Shown piece by piece: positions 28,244 to 44,098 of a stretch of 64,000 nucleotides of DNA; within the stretch, counting starts at the first letter, position 1, and each line of letters opens with the position of its first letter. The stretch comes from Hyphochytrium catenoides (taxonomy: Eukaryota; Protista; Hyphochytriomycota): assembly GCA_900088475.1 (NCBI GenBank), contig FLMG01004535.1, positions 103,568 to 167,567 on the forward strand, written 5' to 3'. A program made the translations under genes and the position numbers. The notes below the pieces were generated by a model. It did no database searches. It saw only the letters and a list, made by a program, of their open reading frames with translations, and was not told the DNA's origin.

Positions 28244-30776
28244 ATGCGGCTAGAGCGGGTGGTAGCTTGCAGCGCTCTCGTCGCCTGTCTATGCGCGCGA
28301 CCGGCGCTGGTCAATGGAGAAGCTTGGGAAGGCGTTGTACGAGGTGCTGCGGAGTCTGAGACAGCCACTCAGTATTGGATCGATAAGGACACACCTAAGG
28401 TACTGCATGCAGGCTTCGAAAGAGACCAACAGCCAGCGAATGGCATGGCTTTTGCCTTCCTTTTCTCCTTTTTTCCCCTTGGCTTCAGTCCTCATACGCT
28501 GTCGCTCTCCCCTCCATACATAGCCCATGTTCCCTCTGATGGCCCGTTATTTGATGCTCATCCATGGGCTTCTCTGTCTCTCATTAGGATGCTTTCTCAA
28601 TCAAGTCTCCCTCCGACGGGAAGCAGCTGACCTTAGTGGCTAGCGACGAGTTCAACTCTGACGGAAGGAGCTTTGCCAATGGCAAGGACAAGATGTGGAC
28701 GGCGTTGGATGGACCTGACGTGACCAATGACGCTTTAGAGTACATGTCACCTGACGCTGCGACCACCAAGGACGGCGCTCTGGTAATTGAGCTGACACAA
28801 AGGCAAATGGGAGGAAGGAACTACGTCGGCGCTCATCTCCAGTCTTGGAACAAGTTCTGGTCAGTCTCCTTTGTCCCTGGACTTCAAGCGTGATAAGGGA
28901 AACTCATCAATCTCCCTCTTCGCCTTTCTCCTCCTCTCTCCGTTGCTCTGTCCTTCATCGTATCCTCGATATGCAGCTATACAGGTGGACTTTTTGTCGT
29001 AAGGAACAAGTGGCCAAGTGGCGGCGGAGTATGGCCTGCAGGTAATCTTACATAGAGTCTACTTGTGTCTCTTCAGCGTGTTTTCTCTTCTTTATATCTA
29101 TCTGGTGCGTCATCTTGGTAGCTCTCTCTCTCTCTCTCCCCGTCGACCCTTGCCACGAATAGTCTTCGGCTTCTGACGGCTCTCCCTCTGTAGCTTGGCT
29201 CATGGGTAACCTTGGCCGCCCTCAGTACGAGCAGTCGAACATGGGCGTGTGGCCATGGAGCTACAATAAATGCGACGCCGCAGCCACCAAGCAGAAGATA
29301 AGCGCTTGCAACGCCAACCCTGGCCCAGGACTCTATCCCAATCAGGGAAGAGGGGCGCCTGAGTTTGACCTTGTCGAAGCATGGAGTGAGTGCCTTTCCC
29401 AGATAGCAACGGTCTCAATGGTGATGACTGACTGTTTGTTCCTCGTTCTATTACACCTGCCCTTTGTAGCCACTGGAGAGGGTTTCAACGTCATCTCTCT
29501 CCAGATTGCGCCGAGCATTCCTCAGTACTATCGTCCTCGAGTATGGAACGCTGACCCCGCGCCGTCAGGACCTGGCAGCTGGTACAGAGGTGTCACCTAC
29601 GAGAATGGCCAGAACGCCTATTATGGTGAGCTCTTGCCGCAATCTTCCCTCCCTGCTAGTCTCCAGCAAAGGCCTCCCTAGTCCGAAGCTCTCCCTATAA
29701 ACACGCCCGTATCTTCGTAGCTCTTTCTTCGTCAGTGCGCGCAGCCTCATGAGCTTTGCCAGGTCCTTTCTGTTAGACAGAGGCGCATCTTGACTTAGGT
29801 GTGGGCGGTGTTACTCGTCTCCTCTAACCTGCTCTTTTTCTTCCGTTAGGACACGATAAGATGGGATATTCTACTGACGCAGTGGCCAGTAGAGCAGACA
29901 TAAACCAAGATGCGCGCTTTTCCTGGCAGACATATTCCTTTGACTGGAAGCCGGGGCCCGACGGATATGTCAACGGTTACTATGAGAACCAACTGATTGT
30001 GGGCGTGCCTGGCTCGGCGCTGGTAAGCGCTTGTGATGGAAATCAGCCTGAACTGCTTTTGCCCATGTCTTCTCGGTCTTTTGGAAACGTGATTGAGATA
30101 ATTTGGGGCTTTGCTTCACTTCCGGGATCTCCTATAGATGATCTTTATTCTCGTGCTTGTCGTTCCTATAGCGGCTTTCAAAGGTGTCGCTCTTTCCTCT
30201 ACCTATATCTTCCTCTCCTCACATCGTCCTCTCTTCTTCCCTTTTCAGGGCAAGTATTGCGACCCTACGAACCCGTCTATCTGCACGGGAGAACGAGAGG
30301 TTCCTAGCGAGCCGATGGCAATTATTCTCAACCTCGTGCAGGGCAGCGCCAGCTCTTGGGCCCTGGGTCCGGCAAAGGCCACTTATCCCTCCTATTTCTA
30401 CATAGACTATGTGCGCATCTACCAGGACCCCAAGGCTATCAACATTGGCTGCGACCCTCCAAAGTATCCTACCAAGGAGTACATTGAGGCTAACAGTGCC
30501 ATATATGGTCCTGAGGCTATTCCTGAGCCGCCACTTAACGCTTCGTTTTACTTCTACGCGCACCCACAGCCCACCACCAAGCCCCCCGTCACTACGAAGC
30601 CCACCACCAATGCGCCAGACACTACAGAAGCTCCCCCATCTTCGAAGGCCAAAGATAACGATCAACAGAGCAATCCGACAACGGCGAAGTCTGCCGCATC
30701 TGATATTAGCATATCTGCCACGGTGCTGTCTTCGGCCTGCCTGCTCTCTTCTCTCCTCATGTTCGTTAGACAATAG
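28244..30776 (+). CDS. KRE6/SKN1-family beta-glucan synthesis-associated GH16 protein, about 7 exons
   Basis: Signal peptide, WIDKDTP, LVASDEFN, LQSWNKFC|YTGG, VWPA|AWLMGNLGR, QKISAC, GRGAPEFDLVE (catalytic ExDxxE), PSEPMAIILN and IDYVRIYQ...IGCDPPKYPTKEYI. These are followed by a Pro/Thr stalk and a hydrophobic C-terminus. Confidence 0.92.
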
Positions 30777-31130: not shown

Positions 31131-33155
31131 CTAAACTCGTGCACTGCTCAAAGAAGATTGCCTTGCAATCTCCATCTCTCTTCCTTCGATACGTCGCACA
31201 TCCTCACTCCTGCAGGAGGAGAGGTCACGAGAAGAGAGAGAAAGCAGATCTGATGAAGCCTTCCTCAAAGAGAGAGAGCTCCTCATGCGACCGAGGCGAA
31301 AGCGGAAGTGAAGCTTGAGCTGCGCCATCAGGGCGAAGTTATTCCTGACAGTGATCGCATTGGACAGCTCCTCCTCTGAGACCTCCACTAGCGGCAGAAG
31401 AGGAGGTGGTGTCGCAGGAAAGAGCGAAGGAGAAAGAGTTGAGACAGGAGACGACAAGCCGATCTGGAGCCAAGAGTGTTGTCTCACATCTCTGAGAGAG
31501 AATCTCTGGCTAGGATCACGGTGCAGCATTCCTTGCAAGAGACTCTGACACAATGGGGAGACAGAGGATGGGATATGCACTTCTCCCTTGGTCATTCTTT
31601 CTAGGAGACAGTCCAGGGAAGGCGATTCCTTATCCTCTTCATAGAGAAAAGGAGGCCTTCCGGTCAACATGACCAGCAACGTGGCCCCTAGCGCCCAGAT
31701 GTCCGCAAGGCAAAAGTCATAGCCGCCTTTCACCGCCTCTGGAGGGAGAAAGTGCAGTGTGCCTCCTCCTCCGCCGCCTTCTCGTTCATCACCTTGCCTT
31801 CCTCCAGCACTATGTGTCTCTCCTCCCTTTCTTCGCCCGTCCTCTTCTGCCTCCTCTCTCACCCAGCAGGCAAGAGAGAAGTCAGCAATCTTTGCTGTCC
31901 TCCTCTCTTCTTCTGTGAGGAGAATGTTCTCCGGCTTGAGGTCCTTGTGCGCAATCCCGTTAGCGTGCAGATATTCCAGCCCACAGACAACATCACGAAC
32001 CACGCCAGCCGCTTCCTCCTCAGTCATCAGCTCCTCCTTGTGTCCCTCTGCTGCCAGCGTATCTCTTTCTTTTTCTTGTCTCTCTGTGAAAACAGGTGTC
32101 TCTCCTGCTCTCTTCTCTCTCCTCTGGTACCGCTGACTTTGCGGGCACCACGTCATGAGCTGACCTCCCGGAGCAAACTCCATAATGAGAAAGAGCTTGT
32201 CTGACGTCGGGTCGTCAATGACTTCAAAGAGCCTCACAATATTTCTATGGGATATCTTCTTTAGGATTGCTATCTCTCTCTCCACCGTGGAGGCGGCCGA
32301 GGAGGCGATGACCCGTCCGTCTGTCCTGCTGCGTCTAAACTCCATCCGACGCTTGAGGAAGGAGCGAGTCATCACCTTGATAGCCACCTCTTCTCCCTCC
32401 TCCCCTAGCTGACTCCTGCGTCCTCGTTGAACTATCTCGGGTGTCTCCTGTCTTGTCGGATCTGTGGCTTCTTCCGCTCTGTCTGTTTGATGTTCTGCCT
32501 CATCGTCCACTCTCATTGCGGCTCTTTCTATTGTCACTCCTTCTTTCGTTGAAGCATCTTCTCCTTTACCATCGCCCTCTGTCTCTCTATCTCTATTCTC
32601 ACCTTCTGTCTCCGCATCTCTCTCCTCTTCTCTTACTCTTTCCTCCTGGTGTACGGCACCTTCCTCTTGCGTTGGCGAGGGACAATGCCGCGCGAGAAAG
32701 ACCTCAGAGAAGGCCCCGCAGCCGATGCGCCGAATGATAGAAAAGTCATTGACTTGCTGCGGCTCTCCCTCAAACGAAGAAAGAATCGAGGCTCTTCTCG
32801 TCTCTCTCACTGTTGGAGAAGGGCTAGAGGAAGAGACACTGGCCTCCCGTCCCTCCGAACTGTATGCCGTTCTCCAGGTGGTCAGCTCTCCTCCAGAGCT
32901 CTCTCCCTCGGAGAAGGACGTAGCATCTCTCCTGTCTTCTAAACTATCTCCTCGGCTTCCGCCGGCCTCCATTAGAGGCGCCACGGAGCCTTCGCCATGC
33001 CTCTTCTCTGCTTTCTCTGGCTCATTGTCCGTCTTCACGGTCTCCTGGGCCGCAGATTCTGGCGCTATCTGCCGGTTCCAGCCCAAGAGAAAGCTCATGG
33101 CTTGGTGAGAGCGGGCGTTAGAGGCGAGCAAGAGCGCCGATGGCGGCTCATCCAA
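31131..33155 (-). CDS. CaMKK/GRIK-like Ser/Thr protein kinase
   Basis: GCGAFSEV, VAIK, EIAILKKISHRNIVRLFEVIDDPTSDKLFLIMEF (CaMKK-family-like segment), HKDLKPEN, IADFS, GTLHFLPPE and DIWALG. The C-terminal VSEEELSNAIT... resembles the CaMKK regulatory segment. Intronless. Confidence 0.88.
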   Translation of the reverse strand: MDEPPSALLLASNARSHQAMSFLLGWNRQIAPESAAQETVKTDNEPEKAEKRHGEGSVAPLMEAGGSRGDSLEDRRDATSFSEGESSGGELTTWRTAYSSEGREASVSSSSPSPTVRETRRASILSSFEGEPQQVNDFSIIRRIGCGAFSEVFLARHCPSPTQEEGAVHQEERVREEERDAETEGENRDRETEGDGKGEDASTKEGVTIERAAMRVDDEAEHQTDRAEEATDPTRQETPEIVQRGRRSQLGEEGEEVAIKVMTRSFLKRRMEFRRSRTDGRVIASSAASTVEREIAILKKISHRNIVRLFEVIDDPTSDKLFLIMEFAPGGQLMTWCPQSQRYQRREKRAGETPVFTERQEKERDTLAAEGHKEELMTEEEAAGVVRDVVCGLEYLHANGIAHKDLKPENILLTEEERRTAKIADFSLACWVREEAEEDGRRKGGETHSAGGRQGDEREGGGGGGTLHFLPPEAVKGGYDFCLADIWALGATLLVMLTGRPPFLYEEDKESPSLDCLLERMTKGEVHIPSSVSPLCQSLLQGMLHRDPSQRFSLRDVRQHSWLQIGLSSPVSTLSPSLFPATPPPLLPLVEVSEEELSNAITVRNNFALMAQLKLHFRFRLGRMRSSLSLRKASSDLLSLSSRDLSSCRSEDVRRIEGREMEIARQSSLSSARV

Positions 33156-38240: not shown

Positions 38241-38867
38241 ATGGAACTTGCAGACTGCGTAGTCTGGCCAGGGAGTGAGTTTGTTCCCGCTCTTTCTGCG
38301 CAGGACCCGAATTTCAGCGGCCACAGGTCACAAAGGACGACCATCACTCGGTGGCACCAGCATCTCATTCTCCAGCTGCAGAGACCGTCAGATCAAGAAG
38401 AAGGCAGTCGAACAGCTGTCTCCGTGCATCAAGTATGTCCTAACCCAAGCAGCGAAGAGTCAGCAGCTGCGCAAAGAAATGCGAAGTTCCAAGTCATCTG
38501 CAGAGCTCGTCACCAGCGCCAAGCCATCAAGCAGTGGAAGGAGGCTATACAGCTCTATTGGGCCTCATGTGCCCAAAAGCTCTTACGGTTATGGAGAAGA
38601 CGTATTCTCAAAATGGTCGTCAAGCAGTGGAAAGTATTTGCAAGATTCTATGCGGAGCAGGAGCTCCGGCTCTGGATGCTGCAAGAGCAGCTTCTTCGAC
38701 GTCAAGAGCATGAAGAAGATGACCACTGCGGGGAACGGCAGAGGAAGCCCTGTTGGGATGCAAAGCGGTTAGAACTATATTTATTGTTCCAAAGCTGGCA
38801 TGAAGTCTGTCTGCAAAGTTGGAAAGAGAGACACCATCAGTCGCCTGCAGCAACAGCTGGAGAGTGA
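38241..38867 (+). CDS. Hypothetical helical protein with Sfi1-like Trp repeats
   Basis: 208-aa non-repetitive ORF containing AIKQWK, ILKMVVKQWK and LLFQSWH. The start is uncertain. Confidence 0.4.
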   Translation: MELADCVVWPGSEFVPALSAQDPNFSGHRSQRTTITRWHQHLILQLQRPSDQEEGSRTAVSVHQVCPNPSSEESAAAQRNAKFQVICRARHQRQAIKQWKEAIQLYWASCAQKLLRLWRRRILKMVVKQWKVFARFYAEQELRLWMLQEQLLRRQEHEEDDHCGERQRKPCWDAKRLELYLLFQSWHEVCLQSWKERHHQSPAATAGE

Positions 38868-38972
38868 GTTATAACTTTATCTAGGTGAATCCTACAGCCC
38901 ACCCAGGCTCAAGGCAGCGAATGGGGCAAGGCATGAGATCCCTGGCATAGCGTCTCCTCGAGAACGTGGACT

Positions 38973-40496
38973 TTAGAGGTCATCCTTGGTGACTGGAAGC
39001 CCTCGCGCCGCATGGAACCGACGGGCGACCTGATGAAAACAGTTGGGTCAATTGCCAAGCTGCCATATTAGGAAGCATTTGAGGGGATGATCGTAGACAA
39101 GTCAGATGCCGCTGGAAATGTGTCAAACAGGGATAGTGAACGGGCTTGGAAAAAGCAGGGGATCAAGCGTCTCCCTCCTTACCTCCTGCCAGTTAACGAC
39201 ATTCCAGAAGGCCTCAATGTAGTCAGTACGTCGGTTCTGGTGCTTCAGGTAGTAAGCGTGCTCCCAAACATCCAGGGCTAGTATCGGCACCTGGCCCTCT
39301 ACCATCGCTGGTGTGTCCTGAAGTAGAAAAGATGGTAAGGTTGTTCTGAGTAGCGACAGAGCAGAGAAAGGCCCGCTTGGATAAAGGTTGACGTGGAAGA
39401 AAGTAGAGCCAAGCCTAGCTGGCGATAGCGAGTGTGTGAGAGACAGAGAAGCCTGAAGAAGAATGTTGCCTCCTTCTAGCGCGCCACCGAAGGACCTGAA
39501 TCTTTTTCCTGCTTGCCAGCAGTAGAAGTCGTTCTTTCCCCCTGTATGCCGGTAGTACCCTCTTTCTAAGTTAACATAAAGCAGCCTCTCGTGCAAAACG
39601 ACTCTTCTCTCTCTCTTGTTCGTTGGTGTAGCGCCACTGTACCTGATTGGGCGTGGATGTGAGGTACAGCTGCTGAGTCTTCTGGTCGTAGGCAAGCCAC
39701 GCCCATCCGGAGCCAAAGTGCTTGGCGGCAGTCTCGCCAAACTTCTTCTTAAAGTCCCCAAAGGAGCCGAACGAAGAGGAAAGCGCCTCGGCCAAATCAC
39801 CAGTGGGCTCGCCTCCTACAAGACAGGACAGTAGTAGATTAGGCGGCAAGCCGTCGACATAAAGCGCCCAAGATAAGGTTGGTCCGGAGAAGGAGAGCAC
39901 TACCATGCATAGCCAAAAGAGAATAACTTGATTAATAGCAGTCCCTACCAGCTTTGGGACCCATGACCTGCCAAAAGATCTCATGGTTCACATAGCCGCC
40001 ACCGTTATTACGAACAGCGCCGCGCAGGGTTTCTGGGATCTGCATTGGAAAGCGTTAAGCCAAGTGGAGAGCGATAGGGCCAAGTAAGGGCCTCTCTTAG
40101 CTAACGACTAAGTGTCTGCCTAGGTGAAAAAGGTTCTCCTCACCTCCTCCAAGTGCTGCAGCAGCTTATCAATACCCATCTTCGCCAAGTATCTGTCCCA
40201 GGGAGGAAGCAGCAAGGTCAGAATGATGGTGAGGAAGGTAGTGGCATGAAGTTAAGAAGAGGATTCACGCACTTGGTCTCAACCTTCGAGCGAAGTGTCG
40301 TGAGCGCAGCATTGAGTTTGTCCGTGTAGGCCTTGTGGTGGCCCAGATGGTGGATGCGCATGGTCTGCTCATCGATGTACGGCTCCAAAGCGTCGTAAGC
40401 GTATGGCATTGACGGGACTTGGAGGTTTTGAGCCTGGCATAGGCTCTGCCCAGCAAGCGCAAGGCCACAGACAATAGCCGAGACCAGCAACTTCAT
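38973..40496 (-). CDS. Fe/Mn-family superoxide dismutase (Mn-type signature) with signal peptide and C-terminal KDDL, 6 exons
   Basis: [55 protein letters not shown]|DTP and [16 protein letters not shown]. The last exon (38973-39029) reads [18 protein letters not shown]. Confidence 0.95.
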
Positions 40497-40725
40497 GGCT
40501 TAGAAGAATCGACTTTCACTTCTGGTCCAAGGGCTAGCAGCTGCACACCGAACTCTATTGTTGGATGATCTTGATCAACAGGCAAGTATAAGAGCTTGTC
40601 AAGGAGAGCGTCGAACGGTTGTCAGGCTTGCGATCTCATCATCCGCGGGCCCAGCCTGCCTGCCACCGCCGCCTCGCGATCTGATGCTTCGAGCTTCAAC
40701 CTAAATTCTTCTATAGTTCTTCGCC

Positions 40726-40780
40726 AAGAGATAGCTGCAAACGGCCATGATTCTAAGAGATAGCCGCAAACGGCCATGAT
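40726..40780. repeat. 29-bp period direct repeat upstream of the SOD gene
   Basis: AAGAGATAGCTGCAAACGGCCATGAT at 40726 and AAGAGATAGCCGCAAACGGCCATGAT at 40755 differ by one mismatch. Confidence 0.85.
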
Positions 40781-41024
40781 CCGCTAAGTCAAGGCAGGAG
40801 AGATCATAGAGGCGGCTGGGAGCTGAGGGCTAATAAGGAGGCGACAACTATGGAGGAAGAGAGGAGCGGCAGTGCGGTACAGATGGGCCAAGGCAGGTAA
40901 ACGTTCTTGTTTATTAGGTCAGTCCCTTTAGGCTAGTTTCAGCTTCAGCGCCTGGTGCCTGGAGAGCACAAGGCACAGGAGATCTTGAGACAACATAGCG
41001 GGAGCCCCCTGGATAATTGGTTGA

Positions 41025-44098
<3,074 letters not shown>

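Follow-up and report, generated by a model that had tools for sequence, protein, structure and literature searches.

Gene model and enzyme family

The window, the whole 64,000-nucleotide (nt) stretch of Hyphochytrium catenoides DNA analysed here (contig FLMG01004535.1), carries on its minus strand a gene for a superoxide dismutase (SOD) of the Fe/Mn family, whose predicted product begins with a signal-peptide-like leader and ends in the tetrapeptide KDDL (Table 1). The rebuilt gene model extended from an ATG at 40496 to a TAA stop codon at 38975-38973, with introns of 80, 104, 133, 325 and 153 nt, all five bounded by GT...AG, and gave a spliced coding sequence of 729 nt and a product of 242 amino acids (aa). 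Because a TAA closes the reading frame two codons ahead of the ATG, an N-terminal extension within exon 1 is not possible. An earlier sequence-only reading of this DNA, made without database searches, had assigned coordinates to the elements of the gene, and all of them were found there on the minus strand; the last intron, which it had put at about 39030 to 39183, came out at 39182-39030, and the terminal exon that it had joined after NWQE closes the spliced product with KDDL, with homology crossing the junction.

Table 1. Positions in the window of the SOD gene and its parts
Feature	Position	Strand	Content or basis
SOD gene, start to stop codon	38973..40496	minus	6 exons, 5 introns; Pfam domains, gap-free homologue alignment at junctions
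Signal-peptide-like leader, residues 1-22	40431..40496	minus	Hydropathy and clade-wide cleavage-site pattern
Exon 1	40273..40496	minus	Leader and first helix of N-terminal domain; H49 (40352-40350), H53, Y57
Exon 2	40144..40192	minus	Clade-specific segment; LAK.G[IV]D..L insertion common to clade, not in bacterial SodA
Exon 3	39949..40039	minus	NNGGGYVNH, ligand H110 (39985-39983)
Exon 4	39643..39815	minus	First half of C-terminal domain; ends with NQ of NQD, Mn-type Gln179 (39645-39643)
Exon 5	39183..39317	minus	DVWEH with ligands D195 and H199; ends ...NWQE
Intron 5	39030..39182	minus	153 nt, GTAAGG...TCATCAG
Exon 6	38973..39029	minus	Last 18 residues and stop codon; KDDL codons 38987-38976

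Both Pfam domains of the family were recognised across the exons: Sod_Fe_N (PF00081) in the open reading frames (ORFs) of exons 1 and 3 (E 1.1e-16 and 5.5e-6), and Sod_Fe_C (PF02777) in those of exons 4 and 5 (E 2e-14 and 2.2e-20), all above the Pfam cut-offs. The four metal ligands (H49, H110, D195 and H199) and the gateway residues H53 and Y57 sit in the motifs IHH..HH..Y, GGGYVNH and DVWEH. The marks of Mn-type enzymes were NNGGGYVNH at residues 102-110 and the active-site Gln179, which comes from the NQD of the C-terminal domain; the sequence-only reading had pointed out the same four ligands, as well as NNGGG and this Gln as Mn-type signatures. Judged by these signatures, the predicted protein belongs to the Mn-specific subclass of Fe/Mn SODs. 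Its mature part contains no hydrophobic segment (maximum 19-aa Kyte-Doolittle mean, 0.56). The AlphaFold model of its closest relative, P0131, revealed a confident SOD fold (mean predicted local distance difference test score, pLDDT, of 90), in which the leader had low confidence and the C-terminal helix extended to the tail.

Homologues of the SOD gene product aligned without gaps across all five junctions, and homology this seamless argues that the gene pattern did not arise by chance. Exon 6 prolongs the C-terminal helix of the family residue by residue (VARRF.AA.G), gap-free at the junction, and has counterparts in the bacterial SodA P0019 (...NWQEVARRYTAAKG) and in Cafeteria (...EEVARRFAAASA and ...NWEEVARRFAAASA). 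On such sequence evidence we take the gene model to be sound.

Comparison of sequencing runs with the locus span 38600-40900 showed that the matching runs were DNA (X1-X3), plus one low-share run, designated 'RNA?', of another organism. No splice joints were seen in the run contigs at the SOD locus, where DNA contigs span introns and exons alike; one 232-nt X4 contig, putative RNA at most, covered 40378-40613, that is, the 5' flank and the start of exon 1. The DNA runs also revealed a second sequence version of the locus (haplotype or strain), the differences and small indels of which were concentrated in introns and flanks. The exonic differences between the versions numbered six, all of them synonymous, and exon 6 contained none, against six in the approximately 200 nt downstream of it. 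Among the indels, a GT was inserted after 39431 and 5 nt were missing at 39602 and again at 39874, all within introns, and one version had a 4-nt deletion at 40533 in the 5' flank.

Relatives, leaders and C-terminal endings

The homology search started from the 225-aa ORF at 39123-39800, limited to region 162-206 (exon 5), and was continued with profiles of the matches, which were searched against 90% clusters and then against 1.84 billion representatives; the matches were compared with the spliced product. No protein more than 64% identical to the window protein was found in the databases searched, so that there was no close orthologue with which to compare the KDDL end. Over the whole mature enzyme, the window protein was 55-59% identical to SodA of the Bacillus/Paenibacillus type, and a small number of longer, eukaryotic-type sequences were closer, with up to 64% identity. 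These eukaryotic-type relatives have in common a short hydrophobic leader, the mature start QNLPLPPLPY, an inserted LAKMGID..LLQHL segment, GGGY rather than GGGH, and a tail that closes with -EL. The window protein carries the marks of this clade, namely the LAK.G[IV]D segment, GGG[YF], an extra residue after QDTPAM and the QNL..P..PY start. Metagenomes scanned with the peptide of exon 4 yielded matches of at most 68% identity, the best of which (L006) was of bacterial type and lacked a retrieval tail.

In a FastTree analysis of 365 rows, the window protein was nested in successive clades of 93, 100 and 113 rows (support 84, 96 and 86, respectively). Clade members and their endings included an Emiliania huxleyi cluster (KAEL), Hondaea fermentalgiana (KEDL), Amoebidium parasiticum (KVEL), Lapot gusevi (KQEL), the chytrids Boothiomyces (KDEL) and Spizellomyces (RDEL), the sponge Oscarella pearsei (KDEL) and three species entries of Branchiostoma (HDEL); the relative from Cafeteria has no KDEL-like ending. 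Several members, such as those of Emiliania and Hondaea, bear the database label 'mitochondrial MnSOD', which their N-termini do not fit. An IQ-TREE analysis of 78 rows, whose tree was unrooted and had moderate support on deep branches, placed the window protein among 38 rows with both leader and tail, and the leader-plus-tail label required 2 changes on this tree versus a mean of 25 when shuffled. A tree that held all 45 leader-plus-tail rows together scored 23 log-likelihood units above the free quick search, with a p-value of 0.74 in the approximately unbiased test (p-AU); a single clade is thus compatible with the data. In the SOD phylogeny, which the sequence-only reading had proposed to build, the window protein is thus placed among leader-plus-tail SODs. 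The bacterial SodA-like look remarked on in that reading was borne out in similarity, at the identities given above, yet the leader-plus-tail clade was separate from the bacterial sequences on the tree.

Signal-peptide calls were heuristic and used hydropathy, charge and small residues at positions -3 and -1. The leader of the window protein begins with the n-region MK, continues with a hydrophobic core of 14 residues and has C-Q-A ahead of the predicted cleavage site A22|Q23; its maximum 9-aa hydropathy was 2.64, and it contains one basic residue, no acidic residue and no Arg. Directly after the predicted cleavage, the mature start, QNLQVP.MPY..., is already the beginning of the SOD fold, so that no transit peptide fits between leader and fold, in agreement with the signal-peptide-like leader and the lack of transit-peptide room described earlier from the sequence. 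Analysis of 77 complete clade leaders revealed A, G or S at -1 in 75 and a small residue at -3 in 76, while sequence and length varied (median, 18 aa). This -3/-1 pattern points to a signal-peptidase site.

Leaders and endings were counted in 370 sequences with recognisable SOD motifs, the ending being scored as xx[DE][LVMIF]. Both a signal-like leader and such an ending were present in 73 sequences and neither in 252; 19 had the leader only and 26 the ending only, the latter being mostly N-terminally truncated fragments. The ending occurred in 91 of the 113 members of the FastTree clade versus 8 of the 257 sequences outside it. Among these 91 clade endings, K occupied position -4 in 69, position -2 was E in 85 and D in 6, and position -1 was L in 71, V in 10 and M in 8, with KAEL the commonest tetrapeptide. 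Positions -8 to -5 were free, and tail length ranged from 4 to about 50 residues. A conserved tetrapeptide (consensus K-x-E-L) after a variable linker is the pattern expected for a terminus that is read by a receptor. Most clade members therefore keep a signal-peptide-like leader and a KDEL-like end, a point that the sequence-only reading had proposed to check, given the frequency of the ending and the 75-76 of 77 leaders with the cleavage-site pattern.

The KDDL of the window protein does not match the PROSITE pattern [KRHQSA]-[DENQ]-E-L. In human cells, in which 152 variants were screened by Raykhel et al., position -3 tolerates any residue except Pro, position -2 strongly favours E, and position -1 takes L or F, M less well and I weakly; with AKDDL, localisation to the endoplasmic reticulum (ER) was still seen, but only partially, in over 20% of the cells (PMC2140024). 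ER-located human proteins end in KAEL (MSRB3), KEDL, KEEL, KTEL, KVEL and REDL (GPX7) (PMC2140024). By the measure of this human-cell screen, most of the clade endings, as read from their sequences, fit the experimentally defined ER code (PMC2140024). KDDL is also the native C-terminus of Arabidopsis AtPDI10, for which co-localisation of PDI10:GFP-KDDL with an ER marker is reported (PMC4030966). As a variant of the ER signal, KDDL is documented, and it is probably a weaker one.

Predicted location and competing interpretations

We favour, with moderate confidence, the interpretation that the gene encodes a soluble Mn-type SOD of the secretory pathway that is held in the ER lumen by KDEL-receptor retrieval. 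The sequences further suggest that it is one member of an old and widespread eukaryotic clade of ER-type MnSODs, and the conservation of leader and KDEL-like tail across this clade lends strong comparative support to the ER-lumenal MnSOD put forward in the sequence-only reading. Judging from its sequence and from family conservation, the 22-residue leader would direct co-translational import into the ER and be cut off after Ala22. The enzyme, whose ligands and Mn-type residues are intact, would then fold, load Mn and oligomerise in the lumen. Molecules that escape to the Golgi would be bound through KDDL by the ERD2/KDEL receptor and brought back in COPI vesicles, as the K-x-E-L terminus of the clade and the published receptor specificity would lead one to expect. 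In the lumen, the enzyme would convert superoxide to hydrogen peroxide (H2O2) and O2, the superoxide possibly stemming from NADPH-oxidase-type enzymes or from flavoprotein leakage.

Several points weigh against this interpretation. The splicing of intron 5, and hence the KDDL end, is based on homology at a locus covered by DNA contigs. The partial effect of AKDDL in human cells (PMC2140024) means that retention by KDDL may likewise be partial. Some 20 proteins of the clade terminate in K-[ED]-E-[VMI] or KPEL, and the code of the human KDEL receptor would class these as poor signals; for the -EV, -EM and KPEL endings, the receptor may differ, or the motif may have a function other than ER retrieval. 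Such members suggest either that receptor specificity differs in their lineages, which are probably haptophytes or other algae, or that retention is leaky and tuned. Finally, the nearest neighbours of the window protein on the tree, P0173 and the Cafeteria protein P0261, lack a retrieval motif.

The same observations feed the chief competing interpretation, in which the signal peptide works and KDDL is weak or unread, so that the MnSOD is secreted or resides beyond the ER, at the surface, in the medium or in a vacuole- or lysosome-like compartment. Plant secretory MnSODs do reach the apoplast, vacuole or Golgi (PMC9543660, PMC6680209), and this outcome would also suit the inefficiency of AKDDL as an ER signal in human cells (PMC2140024), the non-canonical -EV, -EM and KPEL endings and the tailless neighbours P0173 and P0261. 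However, the conservation of the tetrapeptide in 91 of 113 clade members after an unconserved linker is difficult to account for if nothing reads the terminus, some members carry canonical KDEL, HDEL or RDEL, and an ER-located plant PDI naturally ends in KDDL (PMC4030966). We regard a secreted or post-ER enzyme as unlikely on balance, though as an outcome that deserves to be taken seriously. An error in the gene model itself is considerably less probable: the gene could be silent or its 3' end wrong, with the product ending in retained intron 5 or in another exon and hence without KDDL. This would accord with the DNA-only coverage of the locus, with no RNA run over it and no splice joints seen; however, exon 6 continues the C-terminal helix with no gap at the junction, intron 5 is bounded by GT-AG and rich in pyrimidines at its 3' end, and the exonic variants were six out of six synonymous, with none in exon 6. 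Translation of a retained intron 5 gave an unrelated 19-residue tail after exon 5, which has neither a retrieval-like motif nor homology, and this end was rejected.

Two further explanations concern the origin of the leader and of the gene. The leader could be part of a targeting signal for the mitochondrion, a complex plastid or the periplastidial space, as the mitochondrial labels on the Emiliania and Hondaea entries and the ER-wrapped plastids of many clade-bearing lineages might suggest. Against this, the leader is Arg-free and non-amphipathic and is followed immediately by the SOD fold, which leaves no room for a transit peptide; residue +1 is Gln and not the aromatic residue of heterokont plastid import; and the clade takes in the plastid-free Hondaea, Amoebidium, chytrids and animals. 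Mitochondrial or plastid targeting was rejected on the character of the leader, the missing space and the plastid-free lineages, and we give such a destination very little credence. Least probable of all, to a degree that makes it almost negligible, is a bacterial sodA, acquired by recent transfer or present as a contaminant, that is not specially sorted. The identity to Bacillus/Paenibacillus-type SodA and the bacterial origin of the best-scoring solved structures for the relative P0131 would speak for it; the five spliceosomal introns, the eukaryotic neighbour genes (Cdc48 and a protein kinase), the two haplotypes in the DNA runs, the clade insertions common to other eukaryotes and the position apart from bacteria on the tree speak against it. 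Bacterial contamination is refuted on this evidence.

Returning to the favoured ER-lumenal enzyme, its broader form would be an ancient ER-lumenal MnSOD paralogue present in haptophytes, stramenopiles, rhizarians, ichthyosporeans, chytrid fungi, a sponge and amphioxus, which would have been overlooked since the yeast, fly, vertebrate and flowering-plant models lack it or were unexamined for it. We put this forward tentatively, as a possibility with nearly even chances.

Known systems, significance and surroundings

Bacterial MnSODs (SodA; for example, PDB 2rcv, 6pro and 1jr9) share with the window protein the two-domain fold, the four ligands, the Gly-Gly-Gly and the Gln of the C-terminal domain. 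When the closest relative, P0131, was compared with solved structures, bacterial MnSODs scored 220-241 bits and human SOD2 about 170, and the best-scoring structures were all Mn enzymes. In contrast to bacterial SodA, the window protein is eukaryotic and intron-split and has a predicted cleavable leader and a KDDL-ended tail, as well as the extra LAKMGID..LLQHL segment, GGGY in place of GGGH and one more residue after QDTPAM. Mitochondrial SOD2 has the same family and metal chemistry, but differs in its basic amphipathic presequence, its matrix location and its lack of a C-terminal sorting tail. Extracellular Cu/Zn SOD3 and the fungal Cu-only SODs deliver SOD activity by way of a signal peptide and the secretory pathway; they differ from the window protein in fold and in metal, and are secreted or surface-anchored rather than ER-retrieved.

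Closer to the window protein in metal type and route are Arabidopsis MSD2 and rice MSD1, which are likewise Mn-type enzymes with an N-terminal signal sequence and act in the secretory pathway rather than in mitochondria (PMC9543660, PMC6680209). MSD2 is delivered to the apoplast and the vacuole (PMC9543660), and MSD1 is found in the Golgi and in plastids (PMC6680209); both thus travel onward, and no ER-retrieval motif is reported for either (PMC9543660, PMC6680209). Since these two secretory-pathway MnSODs are known, the statement of the sequence-only reading that secreted SODs are usually Cu/Zn enzymes can be kept only as one that is not absolute. Signal peptides have also been predicted for Symbiodinium MnSODs (PMC4416395). 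Human MSRB3 (KAEL) and GPX7 (REDL) and Arabidopsis PDI10 (KDDL) follow the sorting logic proposed for the window protein, in which a soluble redox enzyme carries a signal peptide and a C-terminal KDEL variant that ERD2 reads (PMC2140024, PMC4030966). They differ from the window protein in having unrelated folds and substrates, and none of them removes superoxide.

In the literature searched, the coverage of which was incomplete, neither an ER-resident SOD nor an Fe/Mn SOD with a KDEL-type tail of its own was found. The window protein would accordingly be a familiar enzyme in an unreported compartment and a member of a widespread, apparently undescribed clade. SODs are usually placed in the cytosol, mitochondria, plastids, peroxisomes and the extracellular space. 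Accounts of ER redox chemistry comprise H2O2 producers (Ero1) and H2O2 users (PRDX4 and GPX7/8), and to our knowledge the standard accounts include no SOD. Conserved MnSODs bearing a KDEL-type tail in addition to a signal peptide would supply the missing SOD compartment, and such a family would imply a lumenal source of superoxide as well as a lumenal supply of Mn. Its distribution suggests that many organisms clear superoxide inside the ER. If this is true, superoxide would be a regular by-product of the ER lumen, and a Mn-dependent disposal step would stand ahead of the known ER peroxidases. Some clade-bearing organisms are transformable, among them chytrids such as Spizellomyces and thraustochytrids related to Hondaea. 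The clade thus offers tractable test systems in chytrids, thraustochytrids and amphioxus.

Individual relatives showed variations in architecture. A subgroup of four (P0001, P0009, P0164 and P0183) contains in the C-terminal domain a low-complexity, Ser/Ala/Gly-rich insertion of 30-45 residues, between the conserved GSGWxWL strand and the next beta-strand, and has long tails ahead of KREL, QEEL or GSEL. In the HDEL-type SODs P0295, P0412 and P0415 of Branchiostoma, an extra segment of about 100 residues separates the SOD domain from the signal peptide; the 252-aa isoform P0413 lacks it. Longer proteins with the SOD type of the clade were P0149 from Lagenidium giganteum (486 aa), P0125 from a dinoflagellate (523 aa) and P0286 (1217 aa); these possibly consist of tandem or fused SOD domains and have neither the leader nor a retrieval-like end.

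The upstream neighbour of the SOD gene on the same strand (41546-43394, minus) is a Cdc48/p97-type AAA ATPase in at least two ORFs, which matched CDC48_2, two AAA domains and AAA_lid_3 and bear the Atlas name 'TERA ATPase'. Farther away, a 674-aa ORF with a protein kinase domain lies at 31131-33155 (minus), and a 212-aa ORF at 30138-30776 (plus) matched the C-terminal part of the SKN1/KRE6 beta-glucan synthesis proteins. A 208-aa ORF with no Pfam match (38241-38867, plus) is convergent to the SOD gene and ends about 100 nt from the SOD stop codon.

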